Shown here: one piece after another, positions 1 to 20,981 of the stretch
Layout: each line of letters starts with the position of its first letter
Numbering within the stretch: the stretch's first letter is position 1
Assembly (NCBI GenBank): GCA_977016875.1
Contig: CDRNST010000015.1
Span: forward strand, 3,038,001-3,102,000
Length of the DNA: 64,000 nt
Direction: 5' to 3'
DNA from: Pavona decussata
Lineage: Eukaryota
Made by a program: the position numbers and the translations under genes
Notes under the pieces: generated by a model
Told to the model about the DNA's origin: nothing
The model's input: the letters and a program-made list of their open reading frames with translations, nothing else
Database searches by the model: none

Positions 1-81
1 CTGTTTTCACTAGGTCATAAGCTCTACGCTTCTGATTATGACTGCGACTCCGACTCCGTCGCTAGTGAAAACCAGCCTTAA

Positions 82-472
82 AGGGACAGTATCACGCTAT
101 TTTTAGTAACACATTGGAAATGGAAAAAACTCTATTTGGTTGATAGCAGCCAAGATATAATGAACAAAATTCCATTAAAAGACTATCAGAATGCAAAGAA
201 ACTATCCATGGATATTTTCGCCGGCAGATGACCAAAATAAAAATGGGTTCAAATTTGAAAATCTTGGGCCGACACTTTCAATTTTCGCTGCCGTAACGCA
301 CTGAAAATCGGTTGTACCATATTTTGGTTTAACCTTTCGTCTCAGTAGTCTGTGGAATCACTATAAATCTTTCTCTAAATTAGCGATTTAGAAATTAATT
401 AACACAGTGTTCAAAGTTTAAATTTAGTGAATTTTTGCCCAAAATCATGATATCTCCCATGATACTGCCCCT
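82..472. mobile_element. Degenerate non-autonomous Kolobok-like element, adjacent to the end of a Harbinger-like MITE (1-77)
   Basis: TTAA|agggacagtatcacg ... catgatactgcccct imperfect TIR; the right TSD is degraded. Confidence 0.45.
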
Positions 473-652
473 ACAAAGTTAACATTTTTAAACATCCAAA
501 CATTGACCAACAATAATTATTGCCACAACATTAACTCCCAAAGCTTGCGAGTTGTGGCTTCCATTATGAAGGTTATAGAAATATGAAGACTGGCTAGTAA
601 AAAGTTTGTGCCGTTTCTAATGGATAAAAATTCCCCAGACAGTTTTACTTAC

Positions 653-713
653 GAAACATGTTCCAATCTGATCCAGTCTCCATGCTTAAGATATTCCAAG
701 GGTTGTTCATCAT
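653..713 (-). CDS. POMT2: POMT2 exon 12 ([20 protein letters not shown])
   Basis: tag|...|gtaagt, 61 nt, phase 1-2; the next exon lies outside the window. Confidence 0.9.
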
Positions 714-3700
714 CTAGAAAATTCAAAGGAATATTTGACATTTTTAATTTTCATTCAAATGGATATGTTGGTTGTCAATGAAAGACCGGATGAACCTTGA
801 TAAAAAAAATTATAAAAATTTATAATAATAAAACTTTTAAAACCATATCTGTTACTGTTCCAGTAACTGTTAGGGTAATCAAATGAACTGAAGCAAGTAA
901 TGTTTATAAAGAATTTACTTTACCTAGGTTATTCCCTCAGGGAAAAGTTTATCTGTGGAAGACTTTTACAATAACATTAGGAGTGCTTTAATTTTGCTTG
1001 TTTGTTTCTTTCAGTTTATTACCCTACACATGACTGTAAAAATTGAAAATGCTTGGTTTTAAAAAGTTTTAGGATTGTTGTTTAAATTAATATACACCTA
1101 AACTTTAAATAAATTAGACTTTATCAGAGCTGTTATAATTATTATCACTTTAACTTGCAAACTTTGGAAGGAAGTAGTTAAATCGAGAACATAAGAGAGA
1201 AGAGAAGAGAAAACAAGCAAGATCGATCAGGTATATACTTACTGTAATCTTCATAGGCTTTTTTTATCATCCATTTGTTATTATCATCTTTGTGAGAGTA
1301 GCAAGTTACCTAAAAGATTAGTTTCCATTGATTTAAAAAACATTCATTTGATGGTATATGGTGCAAATTCCATTATTTAGTATTACTGCGCCTTTCAATA
1401 ACACGATTCATTGTTAAGATTCAGCCAACTGTTACGCATTTCACTGCTGTCAAAAGAAAGGTCATGTTTGTGCAATGCGTCTGGCAGATTTTTGTCCACT
1501 TTCTTGTCGGTTTCTCTATTCTTGTGGTCAGCCAGTTATTGCCATAGTGATAATTGACAGCAGTAAAACACACAGTCAAATCATTAGTTGGGGTTGAATT
1601 TCAGAGTCTACAGGTATGTTATTGAAAGGTGCAGTAAACCATTTATATCTCCAGGTTTAAAATAATACCATTACACTTCTTCTAATGTACATAGGCCACT
1701 CATCAAGATTCATATCCTAGGTAGCAGTATGCAGGATTTTTACTGACTTAATAAAGATTAGATTAGATGTAGAATGATGTAGATGTTTGTCATATGAACC
1801 AAGTTTAATGGTCTAGCTCCCACAAGTCCCCTATAGCTCAGTGGTCAAGCATCTGGACTAGGTAATGGTAGGTCATGGGTTTGACTCGTGCAAGGAACAA
1901 TTGAATTTTTCTTCCAAGTATGCCTGCATCACTGAATGATAAAAGAAGCAATGATCAGAACTGAGACACACTGGTGTTGAGCATGCCGAGCAGGATCTGA
2001 GCAGAATTTATATGAGTCTCTGTCATCCTTATCAACTTAGTCCCAAATATCATGATGCACAATTCTGATCTCCTCATTATTCTCATTTAAGTTATTAATT
2101 TTCTTATTGCACTAGTAAGGAGAATTCATTTGAAAATCAAGAGATTTTAACCAACCGCATTGCAAATAATATTATTGGCTATGTATGTATGCTATATTTT
2201 TAGAGGTTACTTTACTTTTTCTTTCAGTTCATTTTGAAGCCATCCATTGTGATTGAAAACTGGTAACTGTTAAGTAGAGGATCGTCTTCGAAAAGCTCTG
2301 GTGATCAGATTTTGCTAAGATCTCCAGCCATTATATGAATCTAGGTAACACTTACAAAACTCATGTAAAGGTGATGGCAAATAAAGAAAAAAATCAGATT
2401 TTATATGGTGATGAACTTCTTTGCTCTCATGACCTGACTGTCTGATCAATATTGTAATGAGAAAATAGATTCCAGTCACTAGTAGGGCTTAACAGGATAA
2501 GCAACTGTGCCATCAGTGCCAAATAGGGGGACACATGTACAAGAGCCTGAGATGATTGTAATGATCACAGAGACATTCTCCTTACCTGCTGTTGCTCAGG
2601 GGGGTGTTCCTTGGGGTACAGATGTGAGTGCGAGTGCAAGAGTGCTCCTCCAGCTCTGTGGTTCTTTAGCGTCACTACTGAGCCAAAAGCCAAGTCTAGG
2701 GAAATAAACATTTCAAACAGAAAATATTGAAATAGATGTATTTACTAAGTTTCTCAGTGTCAGATTTTATTATTGAAGTAGACAGCTGCCTGAGAAGGAT
2801 TTAAGTGAAAATAAAGAAAATACACAGCTACTTTAGTTAAAACAGCAGGCTGAGCCTGGCTAGTAAAATGAGAAACTGATTATTAATAAGTGCTTATGAC
2901 AGACTTTTAAACGAAGGCATGGGGCATACATGTAACAGTCAGCAATAAAGTTGCAAGACACAGACTTTGAGGCAGTGATGCCGATGGTTATTGAAAGATA
3001 AAATAAACAACTAATTAATAAGCAATTTATTAATGATGGAGTGAGTTTAGGGTGAAGTGCTTTGTTTCAAGATCAGAAAAATCTTGGCCAAGGATATGAC
3101 TAAATTGGACATTCTGTTTAAATGTTAATTATTTGAAAGTTAGAGTGACTTTCCTGTTTGGATACAAACCTGCAGGCACAACATTCTTGTAGAGAGCATT
3201 TCCTTTCAGTGTTGACTGAAAAGCTGAACTGAAAAATCCATCTCCTGGGCCACTGAGACAATTAAACAATGAAAATAAGATTCCCTAACTTGTGCTTAAG
3301 ACAACTGTTTACAAGTTACAGTTGAATAATAGTTGAATTGTAATTAAATTACACTTGGAAAGCCTGTTACAGCAACTTTGTCAACTCCTAAAAACATGTT
3401 TGTGAAAAGATATTGTTCATATTCTACAACTACAACTTCTATCCAGATCATTGCAGATAATTTTTCCTCCAATTTTCCTCAATTTTCCTCCTTACACATA
3501 CTTAAAATAAAAGGTTCATTTGACATATTATAAATTTATTGTAATAATTATCACACAGAATTAAGAACCTTTATTTAATGCATGCACTGTGTCAAAATTC
3601 AAATCATTTTGTGTTCAACGTATCCTGAATTGCACAATGAATGCAATCAACTGTCAATTATGGAACCAAAAAATAATGCAGATTTCAAAGAGTGATTTCA

Positions 3701-6700
3701 ATGGCTGTAGATATCACACACAATTTCATGTAATGATGCCATTGTTTGCTCATGCAAGTTTCAATAATTTATGGTTGTTAGAAAAGGACTTTAAAGTAAG
3801 TAATAGTTACACCCGATTATTAAATTATGTTAACTTTGAGGTTTACTTACGTGTTTGGCAGCAGCCGGAAGTGAATGGCAAACCAGAAGAGATAGACAAA
3901 GATGGGTACCATGATCAAACACAGCACACGAGCCATGAACTGCTTACCAACCTCAAACTAAGACAGAAAGCAAATGAGATGATTACTGCTGTCAGTCAAA
4001 TTAATACCCTGGGAAGAGCTTCAGGAGGTTTCTGCTAATGGGAGTTAAAGAAGTATTAATGTGTACACTGTATGGCTGGAAAGACTGGGTGTCTTTTCAG
4101 ACAGGTGTCCACAGTCTTCTGGGAGATTAAAAAATACTGTTATCTGCTTCAGGAGACTTAAAGTGTATATGAAATAAAAAACAAGTTTGACTTATGTGTT
4201 TGTTTATATCCTCATTAATCGAAATATCCGGTTTTAAACTAACTAAAGCTCTTTTATGGGGTATTTTTCTTGCCTCAAAGTTCGAAATTGGCGCTTCGAA
4301 GTGTCTCCATCTTGCGCTCGGTCAAAGCGATCAGATTTCACCGGATATGACGTAGCCAGTGGTTCAGAAAGCACAAAAGCACATTCGAAAGCACCAGTAT
4401 TCAGAAAGCACGAAAGCACATTCGAAAGCACCAGTATTCAGAAAGCACGAAAGCACGTTCGAAAGCACGAGTATTATGGCCGTGAAGAAGGCAAAGAAAG
4501 GGGGAAAGAACTATTGCTCGGCCGGTGGCCCCAGTGGAATAAACTGCGATAACAAGACAGGGACACCGAACATCACAATGCATTACTTTCCGTCGGATGA
4601 GAAGTTTAATACGTGCAAAGTGGACACGTTTTGTGCGCATTCATCGGAAAGATTTCGTCCCGAAGAAGTCCTCATGTTTGTGTTCGGCTCATTTCGATGA
4701 GAGCTGTTTTATAAACGGTGTTAAAAGGAAAGAAGATAGGCCTGTGCGACTCCCACTCGCGTGTTTTTAGCCATGTTCAGTTATAGTTTTGCTATAACGA
4801 GTCTTTCAGCCGGGGAAAGCCCTCTCTTGTATGAGCGGTGCTCCCTGTAAATTTTCTTTCAGCGCTGTATTTTCGTCTTAGTAAATACCATTTATGGTTT
4901 AGAGGATTTGCGTGATATTCACTGAACAAAGCCATGTGATGTTTTGGATTTTGATCTCAAAGGTCATTTCTGGGTTTTTTTGTTCTATCTATTTGACCTA
5001 TTGTTGTTTCTGTTTAGCGACTGTCGTTCTTATACCGTTTGTGGCAATTGGTTCAGGCTTCGTATGGCTCATTTCATTGTGTCTTGCGACAGTATAGCCT
5101 CTCTTTTTATCTTTGTAAGGATAGGATTTGAACCGTGTAATAATCATTATCTTGGAGCTTTTGTATTGCCGGGCCCGGCTATTTGCTTTTGTGGCAAGAC
5201 GTTGAGTTACTTATCTGACTTATGACGGTTATTTGTCTCTTGATACTTTCTTTAGCACTGTAGCTTTGAAAAGCTGTAAAATGCGTTCATTTGAGTACTA
5301 GAGGCCGCTTTAGTTCAGTACGGCTGTGTCTTTTGTTTTCGCTCTGCTCAGCTCCGCTCTGTAACTGTGAGGTTTATGTTGCGGGAGCTTAGTATTTTCC
5401 TCCTGTGTTTTGATTACGCCTTAGACTGATTACTGAGGCAATTCTTCTGTGTTGCTCTGGCTAGGGGCTGCTACGAGTCCTTCAGCCGTTAGTAAATTCT
5501 GTGGCATTTTAGGCAATGGTCAGGCAAGACCGCGGTTTAGATCCTTATCTTGTGGATCTCTTCAGTTGCCGATTCCTGAGAAATGATAGAGATGAGTTCT
5601 CAGTATCATTTCAAAAAAACGCGCTCTTTTCTTAGGATTTATACTCGTTGGAAGGATCGAAAATCCCTCGGGGAAAGACCATCTTGATCCTCCTCGGTGT
5701 CTTCCTCCTCATCACTACTGTGAGCAAGCGGCTCACCTGCGTAGGGTTCCACATGTCAGACTACTTCCATTTCATCGGATGACTCGGTGCTGTTGGATGT
5801 TTCTTGGCTCGAAACGGACTCAGCAGAAGATAGCGTACCATCACTTTCAGACATATTTTCAAAAGCTGTATAGCACCCACTTTATCGTGGTCTGAACTGA
5901 GCATTCAAAGATATTTTCGAGCGCGCAAAGATATTTTCGAGCACACGATAGCAGAAAACAAAGCGTAAACAGAGCTCTGAAACCACTGGCTACGTCATCA
6001 GAGCTAAACTTGTTACCAGTCTCCGGAGACACCACATTGGGCATTTTAAGTCACTTTGAACAGCCAAAACACGGTTTTTTCCTCTTTAGCACTATTCTTT
6101 TTTGTGCGTTTCGGAATAAGGGTATAACCACCTACCAATTCATGAAAAAAAAATTTTTAGTTCATGTGCACTTTAAATATCAGCTTACAGAAGGCAAAAA
6201 TAAAGTGTTAAACTTTGTGTTTTGCTGAGATGGTGACTGAGTGTATAGTTAGAATATTACCGTCCGTTGCATCTAAGCGTGTACACGGGAGGAAAAAACA
6301 TGTTCTAATTGGGTGCAAATGTTGTAGGTTAAAATGAATCCAGATTAAAATGATTTCAACCTAGGTTGATTTGTATTTTCCTTTGTTAAGGTTGGGTTAT
6401 TAACATCTTAAACAAAGGAAAATACAAATCAACCTAGGTTGAAATCATTTTAACCTGGGATTCATTTTAACCTACAACACAAACATGACATGTTTTGGCG
6501 CCAAACATTAGAAGTTTGGAGTAAACAGCTGTTGTCAGCTTGATTTGTTTTCGCTCAACAAAATATTCTTTGCAAGCATTTTTAGATGTAAAGAATACTT
6601 TCTGGAGGCAAGTGTGCTGTTTCTGAGCGAGAAATATGCCTGCAAGTTGAGAAAATGAAATAAGCTTATGAATGGAATGTGCTGATCTGGCGCGACAGTT

Positions 6701-9700
6701 TGCTTAATGGCTGTCAAACTTCAAATACATGTTTGGTGGTAAAACACATCATGTCTGGCACCCTATCTGAACATGTTTTTTTGTCTTATGTCCACGCTTA
6801 GATGCAACCGATGGTATTAAGATGCCTAACCCATGTCAGAAGCTGTCCATTGGGAGAGATTCAACTATACTTTACATGTATTTTTAATAATTATCTAGCT
6901 GATTTCTTTAAAATAGGCCTGCCTGAGTCATGCTTCTTTGAGAGTGTGGTACAAATCTTTCTTTGTCTGGTAGCAAAAAAAAATTATGATAAAAGTGATG
7001 ACAGTTTCCTATTACTGATTTCATTTCTTCAAACATAATATAGTGTGATTAAATTAGTGACAGGTGTGAGTTTAATTATAATTTAATTAATGTCAAACAG
7101 AAGATAACCAACCAGTGAAAGAGTAAGATCTCCTAGAATGTCCCATAAGTTCATGACTGTGGTGATACCAGCCCAAAGGATCACAAACAGACCAACCCAC
7201 TTGCAGCTAATGGAGAGGAGATTCACAATCACACCATTAGTAATATTCTTTATGTCTTATCAAGGCTTACCATTAACTCCGGAATGACACAACAGATACA
7301 CTAACTCTGATCTGGGACTCTAATGTTCACTTTAACACAATTTTATCTTCTGTGAATGTCGCAGCATCTACATGAAGGGGCCACTGACTCACAGTGCCCA
7401 TCCGCTTGGAGGGACAATGTACCTCACCAAAGTGCAGGGGATGGGGTAAGCTCCAGTTTGAACACTGCTGGTAAGAGTTGGATGGTTTCTGAGGCCTCTA
7501 GGGGCATGTGAAGCTCCTTGATAATACAAACTAACACAGCAACACATCCCAGGATGGTCCTCAAGAACTTGTCACATTCATAATGGTCAGATTATTGGTG
7601 CTTCAAGACTACACAAGGGTGACTTTGTGATCTGAATTTGGCTTTCATTTTGAAATTTGAAAAACCAGTTTGATTTTCATTCTCCCTTGCTTCAGGTTAT
7701 ATGACTAGGAATCTTAGTTTGTAAAATGTGTTGGAGATACATGACAAATTATCACTCCTGCCTAAAAGGCACTGCAACCAGTTGAAAGCATAAGTTGCAG
7801 CAACTCTAACACCAACCTAAATGCACAAGATAAAGACATTCCTGAAGCAGTCATCCAGGCCCACCAATGAAAACTGTATGGGCTAGAGAATAAGACAATA
7901 GAGATGAAGTTAACTTCAATGGAAAAAAAAGATTGGCCAAACCTGGACTTACTTACTAGAGAAAACATAAAAACGAAATCTCTTATTATTATGCCCCCCA
8001 CCCCCCACCCCCGCAGCATTCAAATTGATAGCCTCTCGTGTGACAGTGCTATAAATTAAGATGATGGCATCAAAAATAACATAAAATTTGTGCAATAAGG
8101 GGATTTGATTCATCACTTATGTCAGAAATTGTAGGCACAATAAACATTTCAGGTGTCAGGATATCATCCCATGTTGCAGATTTCAAATTACGAAACAGTT
8201 TTGGATGTACCTCTACATGCCTTCGAAGTTTCATTGGCATAGCTTTAATACTCATGAAGATACAAAGAGGGATGCAATGTGTCTCCCCCCTCCCCCTCTC
8301 TCCACTACCACTCATATCCTGGCCCAGGCTAAACAACATAATATTATATTAAGCTATTGGAATACTTACACATTTCTGCAGTTTTGAAACTTGGTAAAAC
8401 AGTACGTTGACAACATAATATAAAACATGAGAATTGGATCCAGAAGAATGTACTGTGATATAGTTATACATCCATGATCTGAAACAAAAAATGCAAAAGT
8501 GTACTCTGAACTGAGTTTTGACAATAACCTTGTCCTAGTGAATTAGTGTGTACACGTCATAAGGAAGTTGGACCATTTATCAGCGTGAGAATGTTTCAAG
8601 ATCTCAAAGCCTATGTTTTTAAACAAAAAATACAAATACAAATGCTACCACATCAGCGTTGCTGAACTTTTAATCGTGTTTAAATAAATGCTGTTATTAC
8701 TACATGTACAACATTAATATTGACTCAACTTACCAAAAACAATAAATGCTGTGGCTAGGATAGCAGCCCCAGTGGACTTGGTGAGTTCCCACACTGTGAG
8801 ATAAGCAAGGGGCACACACAGGGCACCTAATGTTGCACAGAACTACCAACACAATAAAAGCACTGTTAATTAAGGTTACTACACACATTTGTATATATAA
8901 TAAATAAATTAACTTTGTTTAATGAGGGTGACACTTAGCAGTCTGTTACGACTGACAAACCTGTGGCCCTCAGATTCCGGATCGAATTGGAATTTGGAAA
9001 TGTTGGTTTCTGAGGAGAGGGGAAAACCTGACAACCTGGAGAAAAACCTCTCAGAGCAAGGACAAGAACCAACAACAAACTCAACCCACATATGACACCA
9101 AGTCCGGGAATTGAACCCGGGCCACATTGGTGGGAGGCAAGTGCTCTCACCACTGCGCCACTCCTGCTCCCCATATCCCTATTGGTCTCACACATTTGTA
9201 ATATTCTGCTTTCTAACTGAGATACAAAAATTAATTTATTTCTGCATTATTAAATTTAATACTGACAATAATAATTCAATGTGAAATAATTTCTAGGGGC
9301 CCCAGGGAGCTCATTTGGAGAGCGGGGCTTGTTTCAGAAGGGTATTTTAAATCACAAATTTCCAAGAGAACTCAATTTAATTTTACAACATTTTTGTATG
9401 ACATGTAGAACAATGATTCACAATTGAGTTGAAGGGTACTACTGTTCTATAGCTTAATTTACAGTGTACAATTTGTCTTCCCTAATGTAGCCTGTGAGCA
9501 GGCTCCCAAGTGGGGTATGGGGCGAAGACAAAAATCGAGCTCCCTTTGGCCTATACCCCGCTTTGAAGCCTGCTCACAGGCTATCCCTAAATATAACTGA
9601 CATACCAACTTTTGGATATTTTCCACTAACAACTTATTGTCAACATGTCCTGGTTGGGTGGAAATTGAGATTTTGCATCATCTACTATTAATTTTCCTAC

Positions 9701-12700
9701 TGCTCTAGAGCATTTTCTGTATTCTGTTTCTATAACAAAGTCATTTTGACTCAACATATTTTTGCAAACTTTAATAAAGATGGATCTTCATTCAAGCATA
9801 AATAGATGTAAGTTATAAACTTACCAATCTCATTCCTACATAGCTGTGCTCTCCATACTGATCTCCAGGTTTGTCAAATGGAAACGAACCATTGTAACCA
9901 CTTAAATATCCTGCAAATGCTATTGACATCTGTTGCACAGAGAATGTAGAAAAGAGGGTTTAAAACAATAAAATAAAGGCATATGTCTTGTGGGGGTACA
10001 CAGTGTTCCAGATAACTTTCAAAATCCGAGAGTCAACGAACAATTTTTGAGGGTTCAATACAGGTGTAGCTCTGGTTCTCTCTAAATCTTCTTAAGTTTG
10101 CCATTCATTTTGTTGGGTCAGGAAGCCAGGCTTCTTGGGTTTTTGACCTGAGACCCCTCTCTTATCTGGAACACTGGTATAGGTAGTGTAGTGGTTAGCA
10201 CATTAGACTTTTCTTCAAACTTTCAATACAAGATCGGTGGGTCTGATGGTTCAAGGCTAGGCTGATCTCTGCATTACAACTGACAATGCATAGGCCAACC
10301 TACAACTGTAGCCTTGTACCGCTGGACCCTCACATTGTCCTTCTCCCCCTCCCCCTCCCCTGTTGTAAATGGTACTGGTGATAAAATGTTAGGGTAACCT
10401 TACAGTGTACAAGCCTTGAGCACCATCCAGGGAGGCTTGAAGCATGAAGCTTGGGCAGTGTCAGGGCTATCTAGGACTGAAGTGAGACTCTCACTATTAC
10501 AGGACTTCTGATAGGGTGCGGAAAAATTTTGGAAATTATGCGGCACTTTTGAGTCTCATTATGCGGCAAAAAGGTCTATTATGCGGCAAATAATGCGATT
10601 TCATTTTAGCTAATTTAAGCTTGTTTTATTAGGTCTAAGAGGAGCACAATCCATTTTTTGCTGTTCAAGAGGCAATTATATTAGAGCCAGAGAAATGAAG
10701 AAACAGCTGAAATAAATTATTTGTTGCCTCATTTCAAATTATTGAAAATCAGATATTGCTAATTTGGTCAAGTCAGCGTTTGTTGCTTCCCACCAGCATT
10801 TTTTTTCTGTGTTCCGCTTGTGTGACTCAGCTTCAAGGTCACAAACGTTCGAAGATGATCAACCACTATGTTGCACAAAGAGCAACAGACCATCGTCAAC
10901 ATGAAACGTTCCTTCAGGGTACTTTTTTGCCCTGTCTTTCACCGAAACATTTACAGGAAAGTGCGATCTTTTTCTCTCCTGCGAAGAAGTGCTTAGTGTA
11001 ACAAACTTATCCATAATGAGGATGTTTGTTTCAATAATTATTAAAACAAAATAACTACATATTGCAAGCGACTATCGAGCAGTTTACATCGTAAGTATGA
11101 AGGGATCAAATGACATCTTAACAATATATCAATGATTGTGATTGGTGTATTTACATAAAAGGATTGTTTATTCCGTGTCAATGATCACTCGCTTAATATT
11201 GAAAACCAGCACCAGGTCCCCAACATGTAAAATGAAGCATAGAACGCCTGTTTGTTCACTTGTTCAATGAACGAACGCTTCCAGGTGATTTTTGACGCCT
11301 TTTGAAAGAAAAAACTCCTTGAGATAATGTTGAATTAATAAATTATCAGAGAACTTGACATTAAGTGAGATTTTTGCTTTTTTTTTTTCTTTAATTGTGT
11401 GATTTTGTACAAATTCTGCGATTTTTCATGAATTATGCGATTTGTTGCGATTTTAGGTCAATTATGCGAAATCGCAACATCGCATAATACCAGAAGCCCT
11501 GACTATAAGGCAACTTTTTGTTTACCTTAGCTAACGGTGGGTGAACATCGAAGAAGAACTCTCCCTTAATGTACCAATTTGCATGCTTTCCAAAATGAGT
11601 TTCATCCCAACTGCAAGAAGAATACAACAGAGTTTGCACCTGTTTACCTTGGCTAATGGTGGATGAACATCAAAGAAGAACTCCCCCTTAAGGTAAAAAT
11701 TGGCATGTTTTCCAAAATGTGTCTCATCCCAGCTGCAAGTACACAACAATATTAGCACAAAAATTGCCTTCACATACATTTTCCCTTTCAGACTTACATG
11801 TATAGACTGAGTCAAATTTAAGATAAAAATTTGGCTGCTCCCAATTTCTTTCTTATTCACTTTTTGATGGGAGCCCACCCCACAATATTATATCACAAAA
11901 TCTCAATACTCAAACAATCACAGGAAAAAAACTGCTTGAGTCTACAAAAGTTCGAGTTATCAGGAGTAAAGGTTTGTTAGTTACTTTATAATTTGAAATG
12001 AAAGGCAATTTTTGCCCCCAGGATGAGTGTTGTCCAGGGATAAAAAAAGCTGTTTCATTTACGTAAATACATGTAGCTTCATCACAGGATTCCAAAACTA
12101 AGACTTTAGTTAGTAATCTTGCGCAAGATGAATTTCATCAAAAGAAGACTGCTAAATACTCTCTGTCAAAGATGAGAAAAACACAAAACATTATAAACTG
12201 GCTGAATGCTGTTTTGTTATATATACAGTGTATTTGCTGTAAACACTTTTTTCCCTTACTGATGTATTTTCCTCTCCCAAGCCTTATTTAATTAGCAGAG
12301 CTCTATAATCAGTTTTATAAATTCTACTTCCCCCCATTTTAGTAACTGCACATAGGTAGTGGCCAACACAAAAGCCTTGCTCCTTTGGCCACTATGCACT
12401 TCTTCCCTAGAAGGTAAAACTACTTAAATATAATGCTCTGCAAGTTTTTTTTCTTACCATAAAAATATATTGTATTTCGAATAAGTGTGAATAAAAATTG
12501 AATTGAATTGAATTGAATTGTGGTTCTTTGGGCTAAAATGTTAATTACTGCTCCAAATAATCATAATTGCAATTCGAAATTAAACAATGTTTAAGATTAA
12601 TATTATTGAAAGTTTTATCCCTAGCAGGGAGACTACATGGACTTGTTTGTCGCATTTCATCCTAGGATAGGGCTAAAATGTTAATTACTGCTCCAAATAA

Positions 12701-15700
12701 TCATAATTGCAATTCAAAATTGAACAATGTTTAAAATTAATATTATTGAAAGTCTTATCCCTGGCAGGGAGACTACATGGACTTGTTTGTCGTGTTTCAT
12801 CCTAGGATGACATTTCATCCCAGTGGTTTGGACACCGGGATTAAATCATCCTTGGATGAGCACATGAAACTTATCTAGTCTCAGGACAAGATCTTAGCTG
12901 GCCCCCATCAATAAGATGATGGTTAGCTTCTCTAGCTTCTGGACGTGAGTTGTTTTGTACAAGATGAGGCCTATTCTCAGGTGAAGCTGTGATCACTCTT
13001 GTACACAAGAGAAAGCCTTAATTCCTCGCAAAGCGAGGGCCGAAGGCCCGAGTGTAGCGAGGTTAATAAATTTGTCGGGCCGAAGGCCGCGCTCGGGAGC
13101 CAAGCCGTGCGAATTCGAGCCGAACATATATTTATATATATGTATGTTTATATATTTCCGTGAAGGTGTCCGTGCTGCAGTTGCCTGGCAACAGTGCGCA
13201 AACAAAGTATGAATGACGACAGACTGTCTGGCGTTGTCTGAAAAAAATTTGCATACATCGGAAAAAATATGCGTGCATGATCAAATTTCAACTGCAATGT
13301 TCATCAATATTCACTGGATACAGAACTATCTCTCCAGAATCTTTTCCCTTTCTTTTAGAAATCTTTTTTGTGAAAGATTGAATTGAAGAAATTATACGTT
13401 TTGTGGCCGCGGTAAAATAATTTTCCGTGGGAAATAAATTCATCGAACACGACAGCGCTGCACGCCTGTTGTACATTACGTCGCGTCAGAAATAGATTTT
13501 CAACCGCAGAATGACGTCAGACTGTCTGGCGTCGTGTGGAGCAAAATTTGCATACGTCGGAAAAAATATGCGTGCATGATCAAATTTCAACTGCAATGTT
13601 CATCAATATTCACTGGATACAGAACTATCTCTCCAGAATATTTTCCCTTTCTTTTAGAAATCTTTTTTGTGAAAGATTGCATTGAAGAAATTACACGTTT
13701 GTGGCCGCGCTAAAATAATTTTCCGTTGGAAATAAATTCATCGAACACGACAGCGCTGCACGCCCGTTGTAGATTACGTCGCGTCAGAAATAGATTTTCA
13801 ACCGCAAACTAGCCTGTGGAACTAACAAAAGACCATGCTCATAAAAAAAATTCCTATGCCCCTTTTAATCTCCTCATTTGATGCTACAGTACGAGTAAAG
13901 AGGGTTTTCCACCCAGCCCCAGCTTCGCGAGGTTTTGCGAGTCACGTATTTCTAGTTAGTTACATGTAGTAACAGGGCTTTCCATGCAAACTATCATAGT
14001 GGCACCATGAAGATTCATAGCTATCTTGACATTTTCAATGTGTAACACATCACTGATTTAGATGGCTGATGAAGGAAAAATGACTTATATGCTATAAGTA
14101 TTTTGAAACAAAAAGTATCAAATAATTGTAAAGAAATTAGAAAAATTTACATCAAAACATGTGGATCTACAAGCTACAGTTGTTAGTGTCAACAAGGAAG
14201 AGAGGCAAAGTGCAGTAGGGTTGCAGTACCAGCTAAGTAAACAGACCACCAAAACACTTGAATGCTTCGGTAAAGCTAACAACAGGTGGTTGTGTTTATA
14301 GAAAGGTGGGTAGAACGTTCTTGAAATTTAAGCTTACATTGGCCATTCAAATCTGGGCAGAAAACAAGAGACCGGATTATCCTACAAAAATAACAAAATA
14401 TATTTTGCAGATAATTTTACTGATTGATGGACTAGGCTAAGAAAAACACAAAGTTATTCCCATCAAAATTGCATTTGATCAATAAACCGCCGAGAACTGG
14501 TTAATTTGCATGGCGTCTAGAAACTACGGCTATCAGCTTCGTTAGTTTAAGATAAGGAAATAATTATAAAAGACGTTTTTCTGCTTCGTCCTTCATGATC
14601 CAGTATTGAAATATTGTAAAATTTGTCTCATTGAAATAAACCAAAACTTGGTTTTAAAACAATGATAACAATCCTCGTTTTTTTCAATTTAATCAGATGG
14701 CTCTGGATTGTATAAAGCTTATATAAATTCAAATCAGTTTCAAAATGGTGTCACAGTTGCTACACAACCATGCAAACATAACAAACTGCAAACTATATCT
14801 CCATATTTAATAAAGCCCTGGAAATTCTGAAATATCACAGTCTGCAACTTCGATGATGTCAAGTACAAATTTGTCTTCTAGCCTTCCAATCGATGGCCAA
14901 AACTCAATCAAGATGTGAAATATTTTGCAGAAATTGACATGCATACATGTAAGCTTAATTAAGCTTCGCATCAGACGTTCAAACCACTTGCAGGTCAACG
15001 TTTTGCCATCCAAACCGCTATTCTTTGAAAGAACCTTACCATATATGAGTCGGTTCGTCGATTCCGTAAAACCTTGTGGCAATAGTCAGTAGTAATAGGC
15101 CTCCAAAAGCTCCAAGCCGGCCGAAAACCTTGGGGTTCCCTTTCACCACTTCGTACGATGTCGCCATACTTGATCGAGATCCGTCTTTATTCGCTCGCGT
15201 TCTTTTCGTAGAAGATGGCATTTCGGACTCACTATCACTGTGTTTATCCTGCTTTTTCGTTCCTACTCCTTTTCGTGGTGTCATGATTATAATTTTAAGT
15301 TATTTCGCGGAGCTTTTCTCGTAAATCTTCCTTGCCGTGCAGCGCCCGCGTGCAGCTTTCGAACGGACGCTCTCGGCCCAGACCCTCCACTCCCAATGAT
15401 TCGCTCTGACGAAGGCCAAACGCGCGAAACGTCGGCATATTTGGTTAGCACTCGAATCTAGTCTGGATCTCTTTACAGAGGCAAAATTCATACCTTCAGT
15501 TATCAACTCTGTCGGCGAAACCAAACATTCGTTTCTAATCCCCAATGACCGAGCACCGCAGTTTCTTTAGAGACCATTAAACCCCCTTTTCCTCAACTTC
15601 TATGGCCGGGCTATACACCGTATTCACAAATGGCGGATGCGCGGGAAAAAAACTGGCACTAGGCATCAAAACGAGGCGTTTTAGGATAAACAAAAAATAA

Positions 15701-18700: not shown

Positions 18701-20981
18701 CCCGATAACTCGAACCTTCAAGGGAAATTGAAAAAGGTTCGAGTTATCGGGAGTTCGAGTTATCGAGGGTAAAATTATATAGAAAATGACCTGAAAGGAA
18801 AGGAAAATTGGTTCGAGTTAGCGCGAGGTTCGAGTTAGCGAGGGTTCGAGTTATCGGGAGACGACTGTATATAACGAAGCTATCCCTTCTGGATTTTCTC
18901 GGCTACTGAAGACAACAAACATTACAAGCTGGGTGTTTTTGAGGTCACGTGACGAAAACTTAACACGATACCAAACTGCTTGCTAAGTTTCGAGAAAATT
19001 GGAAGCATACTTCCCTTTCAAGTCAAAGTCTTTTGTGTTTAAGGCCTTTCAAGTGAAAGTATGCTAAATTACCAGCAAAGTCAAGCTTATTTTAGTTGGG
19101 TGGTTGTATTTTTCCCATATGGAACATGAAATCCAGATTCAAAATGATATTGAATCTTCGTGCACTAGACTAAAAAAGGAAATCTGATACTCTTGATCAT
19201 CATTGCTTAATGTTTGTTTTGAATTTTGCGTGATATTTATATCTAAGGATCCTCGGTGAAAAAGAAAGACCAATTTTGTCTTTTTAGAAATCTGTTCCAT
19301 ACCAAAAGAGAACTCAACATAAAATTTACCAGTTGTTAACCGTCCTTCGCGTCCGATAAAAAGTGAACTATTCGAAGGTTTTCCCTCATTTCGAAACTCG
19401 CTTGATAGGATTCCAGTCTTGTTGGTTTGGAGCACTGTGCATGTCATAATTTTGGCACACTGAGTTTCAACCATTACGTATACATGACTTGCGGCAAATT
19501 TCCCGTCATAAACTTGAATAGCCCTTTTTCTTGCTATTACGTGTGAGCTGATTCAGCTTGAGACACAATAAAAAAGTAAACGTCGATGGCGATAATCAAG
19601 TTCAAAGATACTATTTCGTGGTAATATTTTATAGAATTTGTCACCTTGCCAACTTCAAGTATTCTTCCACCAGAACACTAGTTTTTCTACACAGAACTGT
19701 TGACGTAAGAGAGGGCAATTTTCACTGTCTTTTTCTCGTTTTGCAGTCTTTTGTGGCGGTCTTTTGACTGTCTTTTGACATTTCAACTGTTTAAACGAGT
19801 CAAACATAATTTATTGTACCCTTTGCTATTCTTATTGTAGATCGCGAGACTAATTTATCAATTGTATTATTGCACCTGGACTTCATTACTAACAGAAGTC
19901 TGAATCGTTACTGGTATTTTTCTATCCTTTTTCGTCTTGAGAGCGAAACTTTTATCTCTACCAGCTTGGCTTAAAAAAAAATTGCTCCTATCTTGTCGTG
20001 TAAGTGCCGATAAAAAGGCATTCAAAGTCTGTCGAGTATTAATTTTTTTAAATGCGCAAACCGGAGGTAGTTGGTGGTAAACTGCTTTGTCTTGTAAGCG
20101 GTATCTTACCACAACGCACTGCGGGAAATTTTTGTAAGGTCATCAGTATAAGAGAAATCTGCAATATTTCGGAATGTTTCAAGGTACAAAGAATACGTTG
20201 AAATGTCATATGCATTATAACAAGACTGCCGCGGGTCTAATGTACCTTTCTGGCACCTAAAACCTAGCCAACCTCATCACGCAGCTGGTTAATAAAACAA
20301 AGCCTTGATCTATGATGAGCCAGGTAACTTTTTGCTAGAAGTAATTCATTAAGAACTTTAAATTTTCAGCATTTTGCGTGTCAAAAACGATCAATGTGGA
20401 CAGCGGAATTAAAAGACGTGTGTTAGGCTTCCTGTTTTATAAACCCTAAAATATTCTAGGTCTGAGAAGAAAAAGTAAGGTCGGTAAGATTATCGGAACT
20501 GTAATAAACCTTTTGTAGTAGACCAATGAATAATTGATACGCCGACTAAAATTAACAGACATTTGCATGGAATATTATGATTATGTACTTACCAGATGTG
20601 CGTCGGAAAGCTCACGTTGACAAATCTCGTGGCAAACGCAAGCCCCACAGCACAAAAGAACGACATCAATTTTATCACCCAAGGAGTTTTGCCATTATTA
20701 ACAACTGACAGCCACTTTGAGACGAGCGATTTATGCTGCTCCTTCCTGCTCGGCGGTTTAGTCTTAAGAACAGCCCTTTTAAGATCGGCTTTAGTTCTGT
20801 TCGGCGCCTTGACGGTCTTTCTGTTCCGAACATCGCCGTTTTGATGCTTTTCATCCTGTACTGGTTTTGTTTCATTCTCCTTTTCGCTCGTCTCTCTGCC
20901 GTTTTCATGTAAATCGTCGTCTTTTTTGACATCGCCGTTTTGTTGGCCATTGTTTTCTTCAGCACTCACTTCCGATCCCAT
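653..20981 (-). CDS. POMT2: Protein O-mannosyltransferase 2, 5' part; multi-exon, continues beyond the left edge of the window
   Basis: Manually spliced GT-AG exons with consistent phases: alt exon 1a 20593-20981 or 1b 15040-15284; alt exon 2a 11648-11732 or 2b 11526-11610; then 9825-9929, 8734-8842, 8370-8478, 7817-7882, 7113-7206, 3851-3957, 3170-3252, 2586-2695, 1243-1309, 653-713. Translation has the POMT2/PMT2 hallmarks [48 protein letters not shown], and the start of the MIR domain ([32 protein letters not shown]). Confidence 0.96.
1243..1309 (-). CDS. POMT2: POMT2 exon 11 ([22 protein letters not shown])
   Basis: tag|...|gtaagt, 67 nt, phase 0-1. Confidence 0.92.
1790..1940 (+). mobile_element. 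Degenerate tRNA-derived repeat/SINE fragment
   Basis: tagctcagtggtcaagc (A box) ... gggtttgactc (B box-like) at about 1834-1887; no intact cloverleaf. Confidence 0.55.
2586..2695 (-). CDS. POMT2: POMT2 exon 10 ([37 protein letters not shown]; start of MIR domain)
   Basis: tag|...|gtaag, 110 nt, phase 1-0. Confidence 0.93.
3170..3252 (-). CDS. POMT2: POMT2 exon 9 ([27 protein letters not shown])
   Basis: cag|...|gtttgt, 83 nt, phase 2-1. Confidence 0.92.
3851..3957 (-). CDS. POMT2: POMT2 exon 8 ([35 protein letters not shown])
   Basis: tag|...|gtaagt, 107 nt, phase 0-2. Confidence 0.92.
4363..4475 (+). repeat. 37-bp tandem repeat x3 (ttcagaaagcacgaaagcacattcgaaagcaccagta)
   Basis: Seen directly; lies in the 5' leader of the THAP ORF. 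Confidence 0.9.
4476..4710 (+). pseudogene. Frameshifted THAP zinc-finger N-terminus of the transposase
   Basis: [28 protein letters not shown] / [34 protein letters not shown]: THAP C..C..W..CSxHF signature, split by a frameshift near 4605. Confidence 0.8.
6260..6814. mobile_element. Tc1/mariner-type MITE with TA TSD, containing a nested hairpin MITE
   Basis: ta|ccgtccgttgcatctaagcgtg ... cacgcttagatgcaaccgatgg|ta. Confidence 0.75.
6320..6479. mobile_element. 160-bp palindromic MITE with TGT...ACA ends and 4-bp TSD (caaa); Ginger-like ends
   Basis: Near-perfect ~65-bp inverted arms; caaa at 6316-6319 and 6480-6483. Confidence 0.75.
7113..7206 (-). CDS. POMT2: POMT2 exon 7 ([31 protein letters not shown])
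   Basis: tag|...|gttggt, 94 nt, phase 2-0. Confidence 0.9.
7817..7882 (-). CDS. POMT2: POMT2 exon 6 ([21 protein letters not shown])
   Basis: tag|...|gttggt, 66 nt, phase 2-2. Confidence 0.88.
   Translation of the reverse strand, partial: PIQFSLVGLDDCFRNVFILCI
8370..8478 (-). CDS. POMT2: POMT2 exon 5 ([36 protein letters not shown])
   Basis: cag|...|gtaagt, 109 nt, phase 1-2. Confidence 0.93.
8734..8842 (-). CDS. POMT2: POMT2 exon 4 ([36 protein letters not shown])
   Basis: tag|...|gtaagt, 109 nt, phase 0-1. Confidence 0.93.
8894..9172 (-). mobile_element. tRNA-derived SINE, near full length
   Basis: Head ggcgcagtggtgagagc...ggttcaattccc, body ccaacatttccaaattccaattcga, (ttta)n tail; 12-bp TSD cacacatttgta at 8882-8893 and 9189-9200. 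Confidence 0.85.
9488..9583. mobile_element. Short TAGCC...GGCTA hairpin MITE
   Basis: TIR tagcctgtgagcaggct / agcctgctcacaggcta; imperfect 9-bp TSD tccctaatg / tccctaaat. Confidence 0.7.
9825..9929 (-). CDS. POMT2: POMT2 exon 3 ([35 protein letters not shown])
   Basis: cag|...|gtaagt, 105 nt, phase 0-0. Confidence 0.93.
10180..10470 (+). mobile_element. Degenerate tRNA-derived SINE
   Basis: ggtagtgtagtggttagc head, ggttcaagg B-box-like, body tgtaaatggtactgg...gggtaacct...catccagggagg. Confidence 0.5.
10500..11501. mobile_element. Non-autonomous hAT-like element ending 24 nt from the exon 2b donor
   Basis: TIR caggacttctgata / taccagaagccctg, repeated subterminal attatgcg motifs; imperfect TSD (actatta / actataa). 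Confidence 0.6.
11526..11610 (-). CDS. POMT2: POMT2 exon 2b (85 nt; [29 protein letters not shown])
   Basis: Acceptor ttcttcttgcag; donor AAG|GTAAAC; phase 2 to 0; 72/85 nt identical to exon 2a. Confidence 0.88.
11648..11732 (-). CDS. POMT2: POMT2 exon 2a (85 nt; [29 protein letters not shown])
   Basis: Acceptor tacttgcag with upstream gctaat branch-like motif; donor AAG|GTAAAC; phase 2 to 0. Confidence 0.9.
12530..12809. repeat. 140-bp tandem duplication x2
   Basis: gggctaaaatgttaattactgctcc... at 12530 and 12670. Confidence 0.9.
13018..13956 (+). mobile_element. Helentron/Helitron-like non-autonomous element with an internal ~298-bp tandem duplication (13211-13807)
   Basis: 5' hairpin cctcgc-aaa-gcgagg, complementary 3' subterminal gcttcgcgagg, terminal ctagt; the internal duplication is seen directly. 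Confidence 0.6.
15040..15284 (-). CDS. POMT2: POMT2 alternative first coding exon 1b (81 codons + 2 nt; short cytosolic tail, TM1, ATRF...PTHI)
   Basis: In-frame TAA 6 codons upstream of the ATG; ends CAT ATA TG|GTAAGG (phase 2); encodes ...[19 protein letters not shown]. Confidence 0.9.
15400..15590 (+). mobile_element. Penelope-like element fragment with a degenerate minimal type I hammerhead ribozyme motif (15403-15436)
   Basis: gct-CTGACGA-aggccaaacgcgc-GAAA-cgTC-ggc, followed by ttatcaactctgtcggcgaaaccaaa...gcaccgcagtttctttaga as recalled for cnidarian Penelope-associated repeats. Confidence 0.6.
15612..17347. mobile_element. 1.7-kb non-autonomous DNA transposon with ~85-bp TIRs, between POMT2 exons 1a and 1b
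   Basis: tatacaccgtattcacaaatggcgga...aaaacgaggcgttttaggataaacaaaaa and its reverse complement at about 17260-17347; superfamily uncertain (Academ-like ends). Confidence 0.8.
18692..18867. mobile_element. pogo/Tigger-like MITE with TA TSD
   Basis: ta|cagtcgactcccgataactcgaacc ... ggttcgagttatcgggagacgactg|ta. Confidence 0.85.
20593..20981 (-). CDS. POMT2: POMT2 alternative first coding exon 1a (129 codons + 2 nt; long cytosolic tail, TM1, ATRF...PTHI)
   Basis: aaacATGg start; ends CAC ATC TG|GTAAGT (phase 2); encodes ...[16 protein letters not shown], matching the POMT2 TM1/loop-1 junction. Confidence 0.9.

Follow-up and report, generated by a model that had tools for sequence, protein, structure and literature searches.

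The window analysed here is a 64,000-nt stretch of the Pavona decussata genome that contains part of a gene on the minus strand. The gene runs from position 20981 down to about 5.4 kb before the window start, where it ends in ...WMDSWE. To place it in a family, a fish POMT2 (P0111) was compared by tblastn with the window and the 20 kb beyond its start. Residues 76-761 aligned across about 21 exons, including the CWDETHFGK segment, the PMT domain, the MIR motifs and the C-terminus. A PMT domain with the DE motif, a MIR domain and a C-terminal 4TMC region are thus found in one gene, all with POMT2-type sequence. Judged from these features, the gene is a complete POMT2 orthologue of the PMT2 subfamily. 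A second, separate PMT gene is present on contig C19, where the DE-motif exon is single. The genome also holds at least a dozen GFP-like gene segments. The features of the POMT2 gene that lie within the window are collected in Table 1.

Table 1. Features of the coral POMT2 gene within the window, in the direction of transcription
Feature	Position	Strand	Description
Distal alternative first coding exon	20593..20981	(-)	start Met to ...PTHI + TG; gtaagt donor
Proximal first coding exon	15040..15284	(-)	start Met to ...PTHI + TG; gtaagg donor
TGCTAAT, putative branch site for the 2a acceptor	11751..11757	(-)	TGCTAAC, TGCTAAT or TGCTGAC in five lineages
Exon 2a	11648..11732	(-)	85 nt; codes for C + 28 residues; DE motif and horizontal-helix region of luminal loop 1
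Spacer, 2a donor to 2b acceptor	11611..11647	(-)	37 nt
TGCAAAC, putative branch site for the 2b acceptor	11632..11638	(-)	invariant in five lineages; assigned by homology to the upstream TGCTAAT/TGCTAAC
Exon 2b	11526..11610	(-)	85 nt; codes for C + 28 residues
Exon 3	9825..9929	(-)	35 residues; common acceptor for 2a or 2b
Further POMT2 exons	1..8842	(-)	remainder of the PMT domain and beginning of the MIR domain; found by tblastn and Pfam

The two first coding exons each encode a separate cytosolic tail and first transmembrane helix, with a start codon of their own. The distal one has the same phase as the proximal one and is kept both in the genomes that carry the exon pair described below and in two single-copy relatives (L015 and L016). 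As both first exons end in ...PTHI followed by TG|gt, either can be joined to either version of exon 2. Mammalian POMT2 is made in somatic and testis-specific forms by means of alternative first exons, and these forms are known to differ only in a cytosolic N-terminal extension. The coral gene resembles it in having two alternative first coding exons, but differs in that each of them supplies its own first transmembrane helix and that a further pair of alternative exons, 2a and 2b, follows directly.

Exon 2 is present twice in the gene, and the region that contains the pair is a single locus in the 602-Mb assembly. Both exons have a ttgcag acceptor and an AAG|gtaaac donor, and both peptides match the Pfam PMT family (PF02366) at profile positions 23-50, with E values of 4e-8 and 2e-7. 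A repeat search of the window revealed a direct repeat with a period of 122 that extends over 109 nt with 84% identity, and the duplicated units are 89% identical over a 120-nt alignment. The first bases of the spacer, gtaaaca, copy the start of the downstream intron, and the next 30 nt or so duplicate the 3' end of the upstream intron. These 30 nt comprise a branch-site homologue, a pyrimidine tract and an AG. The two exons differ at 13 nt, comprising nine synonymous in-frame changes, one change in the split Cys codon and three changes that replace two residues (Nei-Gojobori counts: Sd 9, Nd 3), and the two peptides are unlike only at one F/W and one L/I position. The first base of exon 2 is either C or T and completes the Cys codon (TG+C or TG+T) after either first exon.

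The reading frame places strict limits on how the two exons can be combined. One base of exon 2 finishes a codon and the end of the exon is a codon boundary, so that with a length of 3n+1 the frame is shifted if both copies are in or both are out. Continuing the frame from exon 2a through the spacer leads to a stop codon at 11533-11531. The two copies are of equal length and phase and similar in sequence, and in five lineages both have the canonical ttgcag acceptor, an AAG|gtaa donor and a frame without stops, as expected of a homologous exon pair. Most of this had been anticipated in a preliminary description made from the letters alone, and reading the minus strand bore it out: two 85-nt exons with these splice sites and a 37-nt spacer that matches the quoted letters exactly; a 122-bp tandem duplication that included the upstream splice region, now visible as the period-122 repeat and as the 3' end of the upstream intron within the spacer; 13 differences, of which ten are synonymous when the split Cys codon is counted with the nine in frame; a phase of 2 to 0, with a frameshift on inclusion of both copies or neither; and a stop at 11531 on reading through the spacer. 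Its assignment of the gene to POMT2 likewise agreed with the tblastn alignment and the Pfam PMT matches, and its assignment of the exon to the DE-motif loop agreed with the Pfam match and with the alignment to Pmt2 and Pmt4 given below.

The motif GTGCAAAC in the spacer is the homologue of the upstream GTGCTAAT/GTGCTAAC. It is unchanged in all carriers of the pair, and the spacer indels that distinguish the carriers all lie 3' of GTGCAAAC, before the pyrimidine tract. If this motif serves exon 2b as branch site, its branch A would lie 14 nt from the 2a donor. In human genes, a distance of less than 50 nt between donor and branch point is used as the criterion for steric interference (PMC5740500), and in C. 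elegans the intervening introns of 14-30 nt in mutually exclusive exon pairs are never removed (PMC4165533). The spacer measures 37-41 nt in all carriers, and these human and C. elegans limits serve as a yardstick that may not be the coral's own; with the C. elegans yardstick taken as introns of less than 40 nt, an intron of 41 nt sits at the limit. Retention of the spacer would introduce a stop in the window and in contig L014 and a frameshift in L003, and it leaves the frame open only in L002, indicating that a retained spacer is not a conserved productive option. The local RNA structure at the locus was no more stable than that of shuffled sequence (z -0.8), and Rfam gave no matches within positions 1-22000 of the window.

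We propose that the arrangement arose by tandem duplication of a minimal 122-bp unit, consisting of exon 2 with about 30 nt of the upstream intron and about 7 nt of the downstream intron. The upstream-intron part of this unit would have brought a branch site, a pyrimidine tract and an AG along with the new copy. Each mature mRNA would then contain one exon 2, either 2a or 2b. When 2a is chosen, its donor would join exon 3 and 2b would leave with the intron; when 2b is chosen, its acceptor would use the branch site in the spacer and 2a would leave with intron 1. Joining of 2a to 2b would be sterically prevented, because the donor and the branch site are only about 14 nt apart, and transcripts that include or skip both exons would be frameshifted and subject to nonsense-mediated decay. 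The two products would be full POMT2 enzymes, unlike only at the F/W and L/I positions. A steric block at the putative branch site, together with surveillance of the frame by the presumed decay, would be enough to account for the exclusivity, and we infer that both exons are used in RNA. On balance we consider it likely that the tandem-duplicated exons 2a and 2b of coral POMT2 are spliced in a mutually exclusive manner.

The classic steric-interference pair is formed by exons 2 and 3 of alpha-tropomyosin. The coral pair appears to resemble it, as the predicted downstream branch point would be too near the upstream donor for the exons to be joined. It differs in that the whole intron is only 37-41 nt, the exons are near-identical paralogues and the branch point is assigned from its sequence. 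The frame incompatibility of the 85-nt exons in coral POMT2 also adds a second safeguard. The mechanism of steric interference is summarised in PMC4165533 and PMC5740500. Closer in architecture are the short-intron pairs of C. elegans, such as egl-15 5B/5A (14 nt) and let-2 9/10 (30 nt), and gly-5 9b/9c and gly-6 8a/8b, which are also mutually exclusive with very short intervening introns (PMC4165533). There, as probably in the coral, homologous exons produced by tandem duplication are separated by an intron that is too short for removal, and gly-5 and gly-6 likewise encode O-glycosyltransferases of the secretory pathway, although coral POMT2 belongs to a different enzyme family (GT-C fold PMT) and a different phylum. 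In all five C. elegans clusters the exon lengths are a multiple of three, whereas the coral exon is 3n+1, so that decay of frameshifted forms can act as well. In the atlas of human mutually exclusive exons, 9% of the clusters have a donor-to-branch-point distance below 50 nt, and in 60% the exon lengths are not divisible by three (PMC5740500). The coral exons have the properties used to define pairs in that atlas, being neighbouring, equal in length, in the same frame and similar in sequence, with GT-AG introns, and of its mechanistic classes they fit the one with lengths that are not 3n and, given the predicted branch site, would also fit the one with a short donor-to-branch distance. A full-text literature search for POMT2 with 'mutually exclusive' yielded no paper describing such exons in POMT2, and alternative catalytic-loop exons of POMT2 were found in the literature for no organism. 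Pairs of this kind, duplicated in tandem and parted by an intron too short to splice, are already known, while the putative POMT2 instance appears to be new to the literature searched.

To find relatives of the locus, the read-through ORF of exon 2a was used as a query, which returned genomic ORFs, and the contigs were then compared. The tandem pair was recovered from four other independent assemblies (long-read metagenome) and from ten short-read runs. ERZ25073805 contains two contigs with the pair. One of them (L019, spacer 37 nt) shows 100% identity with the window across 20 kb and hence derives from the same individual, and the other (L002, spacer 41 nt) has similar coverage and blocks that are 91-98% identical to L019, and is probably the other haplotype of that individual. 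The pair is also present in ERZ26692669 (L014, spacer 41 nt), in ERZ26692694 (L003, spacer 40 nt) and in the ten short-read runs (L004-L013, spacer 37 nt). Splice sites and open frames are intact in both copies in all carriers, both copies are free of indels and stops in five lineages, and the Trp of copy b is kept throughout. The conservation in related genomes that the preliminary description had proposed as a check was thus found in L002, L003, L014 and L004-L013. The I/L state of exon 2b varies among carriers, even between two contigs of one sample.

At least ten related lineages have just one copy of exon 2. These include L015, L016, L020 and L021, where exon 3 follows after a few hundred bases, and the coral-type JGI contigs L022-L032, which were found by a protein-guided scan. 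No contig with the W variant was detected in the JGI metagenomes by a scan with the exon-2b DNA pattern, and the protein-guided scan gave single-copy relatives only. The occurrence of the pair in independent assemblies, with a single exon 2 in relatives, assigns the duplication to the stem lineage of a single clade, and the comparison indicates that the pair is specific to a group of related probable corals. Since both copies are intact across several related genomes, they are very probably either/or exons. Searches of protein collections yielded no spliced coral fragment with either exon: for coral-type sequences, those with the read-through ORF and with P0001 returned genomic ORFs only, and one with a full-length POMT2 profile gave fish POMT2 only among the 120 matches listed.

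To date the duplication, divergence was calibrated on the remaining exons of POMT2, as pS relative to the window. The values were 0.02 for L002, 0.105 for L014, 0.17 for L003 and about 0.6 for the single-copy relatives L015 and L020. Between copies a and b, pS was 0.53-0.60 and pN 0.03-0.04, giving a pN/pS of about 0.07. This between-copy pS indicates that the duplication and the divergence from the single-copy relatives are of roughly similar age. Copy-specific synonymous states are common to all carriers, showing that the copies have not been homogenised by gene conversion.

The position of the two variable residues was examined by comparison with the fungal structures of Pmt1-Pmt2 (6P25) and Pmt4 (9E61, 9I5K). 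The exon peptide aligns without gaps to residues 91-118 of yeast Pmt2 and 79-106 of Pmt4. The structures of Pmt4 show the acceptor peptide in contact with three residues of the first horizontal helix, F79, D80 and H83, of which D80 acts as the catalytic base, while H101 assists in holding the donor phosphate (PMC12586580). The DE motif is invariant across the family (PMC12705809). The two coral exons agree at all of these residues, including the DE motif. The positions at which they vary are equivalent to Y90 and L92 of Pmt4 (Y102 and L104 of Pmt2), which lie 10 and 12 residues past the catalytic Asp and are not named as contact residues in the excerpted text of PMC12586580. Among the sequences gathered, WYI is the commonest POMT2 state in other animals, YYI occurs in fish and FYL in single-copy anthozoans. 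The last of these suggests that exon 2a retains the local ancestral state, and exon 2b has the state that is common elsewhere. The preliminary description had proposed two variants close to the active site; this proximity stands in terms of primary sequence, but the F/W and L/I substitutions are mild and fall within natural POMT2 variation. Both forms of the enzyme are very probably active. An AlphaFold2 model of fish POMT2, built from a shallow fish-only alignment, had a mean pLDDT of 54 and values below 50 over the loop.

These results bear on the biological meaning of the choice between the exons. A serious alternative is that the choice is forced without any functional difference, with each copy present in a sizeable fraction of the transcripts and held by purifying selection for enzyme dose alone, and the F/W and L/I states neutral. 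The splicing mechanism would be the same as in our main reading, and only its biological meaning would differ. The two states are both inside the normal variation of the family, the I/L state differs among carriers and between contigs of one sample as noted above, and neither local RNA structure nor another regulatory signal was detected, all of which agree with neutrality. On the other hand, the change from F to W takes two nucleotide substitutions and is fixed throughout the five carrier lineages, and the arrangement has persisted since approximately the split from the single-copy relatives, although neutrality is still compatible with both observations. We regard this explanation as having a substantial chance of being correct, even if we would not expect it. 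A more ambitious possibility is that exons 2a and 2b encode two regulated variants of the catalytic groove with different acceptor preference or POMT1 pairing, possibly coupled to the first exons. We consider this rather unlikely; if it were true, one gene would give rise to up to four N-terminal catalytic modules. Under the same reading, the variation of exon 2b between I and L may be an old polymorphism that several species have in common.

Further analysis of the changes among carriers addressed whether each copy is maintained as protein-coding sequence. Copy b has accumulated six synonymous changes and the one I/L change, and copy a three synonymous changes and one in the split Cys codon, leaving its peptide identical in five lineages. 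Only 18-26% of random substitutions in exons 2a and 2b would be synonymous, and a neutral copy b would show the observed pattern with a probability of 1.7e-4 to 1.3e-3, or of 1.6e-6 to 3.3e-5 when the two copies are pooled. The informative sites are few in absolute number, as the exons are only 85 nt. The flanking introns differ by 6-39% and contain many indels. Nearly all-synonymous change next to divergent introns argues that both exons are constrained as protein-coding sequence, and it points to purifying selection on the protein in both copies in five lineages, in line with what the preliminary description had concluded.

This pattern also weighs on the explanations in which only one copy encodes protein. 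Exon pairs with short introns can serve as decoys, and one copy might be confined to such a role, as a poison exon or splicing-regulatory sequence, with the other alone present in productive mRNA. A non-coding role needs no open frame and no particular amino-acid sequence, yet 9-10 synonymous changes stand against one conservative replacement, and neither copy has acquired an indel or a stop in five lineages while the introns beside them diverged by 6-39%. We therefore find a decoy improbable. It is more improbable still that one copy died recently and merely looks intact, or that it has been kept similar by gene conversion. The shortness of the exons, with their few informative sites, leaves some room for a recent loss, but the duplication is old (between-copy pS 0.53-0.60), the copy-specific differences common to all carriers exclude homogenisation, and at the gene-wide pS of 0.17 about 12 non-synonymous changes would be expected between the window and L003 if a copy were neutral, where one was seen in copy b and none in copy a. 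An assembly artefact with haplotypes collapsed or mis-joined in tandem, already doubted in the preliminary description, is refuted, since four other independent assemblies and ten short-read runs share the pair, its copies carry species-specific substitutions and relatives have a single exon 2.

Animals depend on the O-mannosylation of proteins by POMT1-POMT2, an essential process, and humans who lose it develop dystroglycanopathies. For genome annotation, the coral gene is a warning, as gene predictors usually take one of the two copies, or fuse both and break the frame. Under the mutually exclusive reading, the locus would represent a clean natural case in which a minimal tandem exon duplication yields an either/or choice at once, owing to the shortness of the intron and the incompatible frames, and in which this choice was retained for a long time after the duplication. 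Should the products turn out to have different functions, the F/W and L/I substitutions near the acceptor groove would indicate which residues tune the specificity of PMT enzymes. If they are alike in function, coral POMT2 would provide a well-dated example of a splicing choice that has been kept without specialisation.

POMT2, on the minus strand of the window, has two alternative first coding exons (see table), which are homologous to each other. Each supplies a separate start codon, tail and first transmembrane helix, and the two exons finish in the same phase. Both of them were found intact in all carriers of the exon 2a/2b pair (the window and loci L002, L003 and L014) and also in L015 and L016, relatives with a single exon 2, indicating that the first-exon duplication predates that of exon 2.

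Mobile-element insertions explain much of the difference in POMT2 intron length between lineages, and open reading frames of such elements were located inside or beside the gene in L015 and L003. In the window, intron 1 contains a 131-nt unit present twice in tandem (12530-12800; 95% identical, spacing 140). In the single-copy relative L029, exon 2 is joined directly to the start of exon 3 while intron-like sequence remains upstream of exon 2; either incomplete splicing of a transcript or a retrocopy located at the contig end may account for this arrangement.

Features of POMT2 loci in the window and in related sequences
Feature	Location	Strand	Remark
Alternative first coding exon, distal	window 20593-20981	minus	homologous to proximal exon
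Alternative first coding exon, proximal	window 15040-15284	minus	homologous to distal exon
Reverse-transcriptase ORF, 849 aa	L015:5837-8386		inside or beside POMT2 locus
THAP-domain ORF	L003:17362-17589		inside or beside POMT2 locus
Exon 2 fused directly to exon 3 start (…PPLAKMSIAFA)	L029:2500-2595		JGI contig Ga0099807_1030730, single-copy relative
Exon 2a, spacer and exon 2b as one open frame	L002:10001-10363		protein P0001

Elsewhere in the genome assembly of the window (G000), a second PMT-family gene was observed at C19:2505370-2511385, presumably the POMT1 partner of POMT2, in which the DE-motif exon is single. At least nine GFP-like gene segments are clustered on one contig (C65:1640060-1997564), with more elsewhere in the genome, which is consistent with an anthozoan genome.

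Sample ERZ25073805, which matches the window exactly, has two POMT2 loci of similar coverage, L019 and L002. Blocks shared between them are 91-98% identical and are accompanied by several kilobase-scale indels. L002 probably represents the second haplotype of an individual that is highly heterozygous or a hybrid. The L002 spacer is 41 nt long, and exon 2b of this locus encodes Leu in place of the Ile of L019 and the window. In two states (AAA and CTT) this exon agrees with the distant L003 and not with the window, a hint of an old polymorphism shared between lineages.

With the 41-nt spacer, exon 2a, spacer and exon 2b of the L002 allele read as a single open frame. This open frame through the spacer is not conserved in the other carriers. 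Spacer retention in the L002 allele would insert an additional catalytic loop without shifting the frame.
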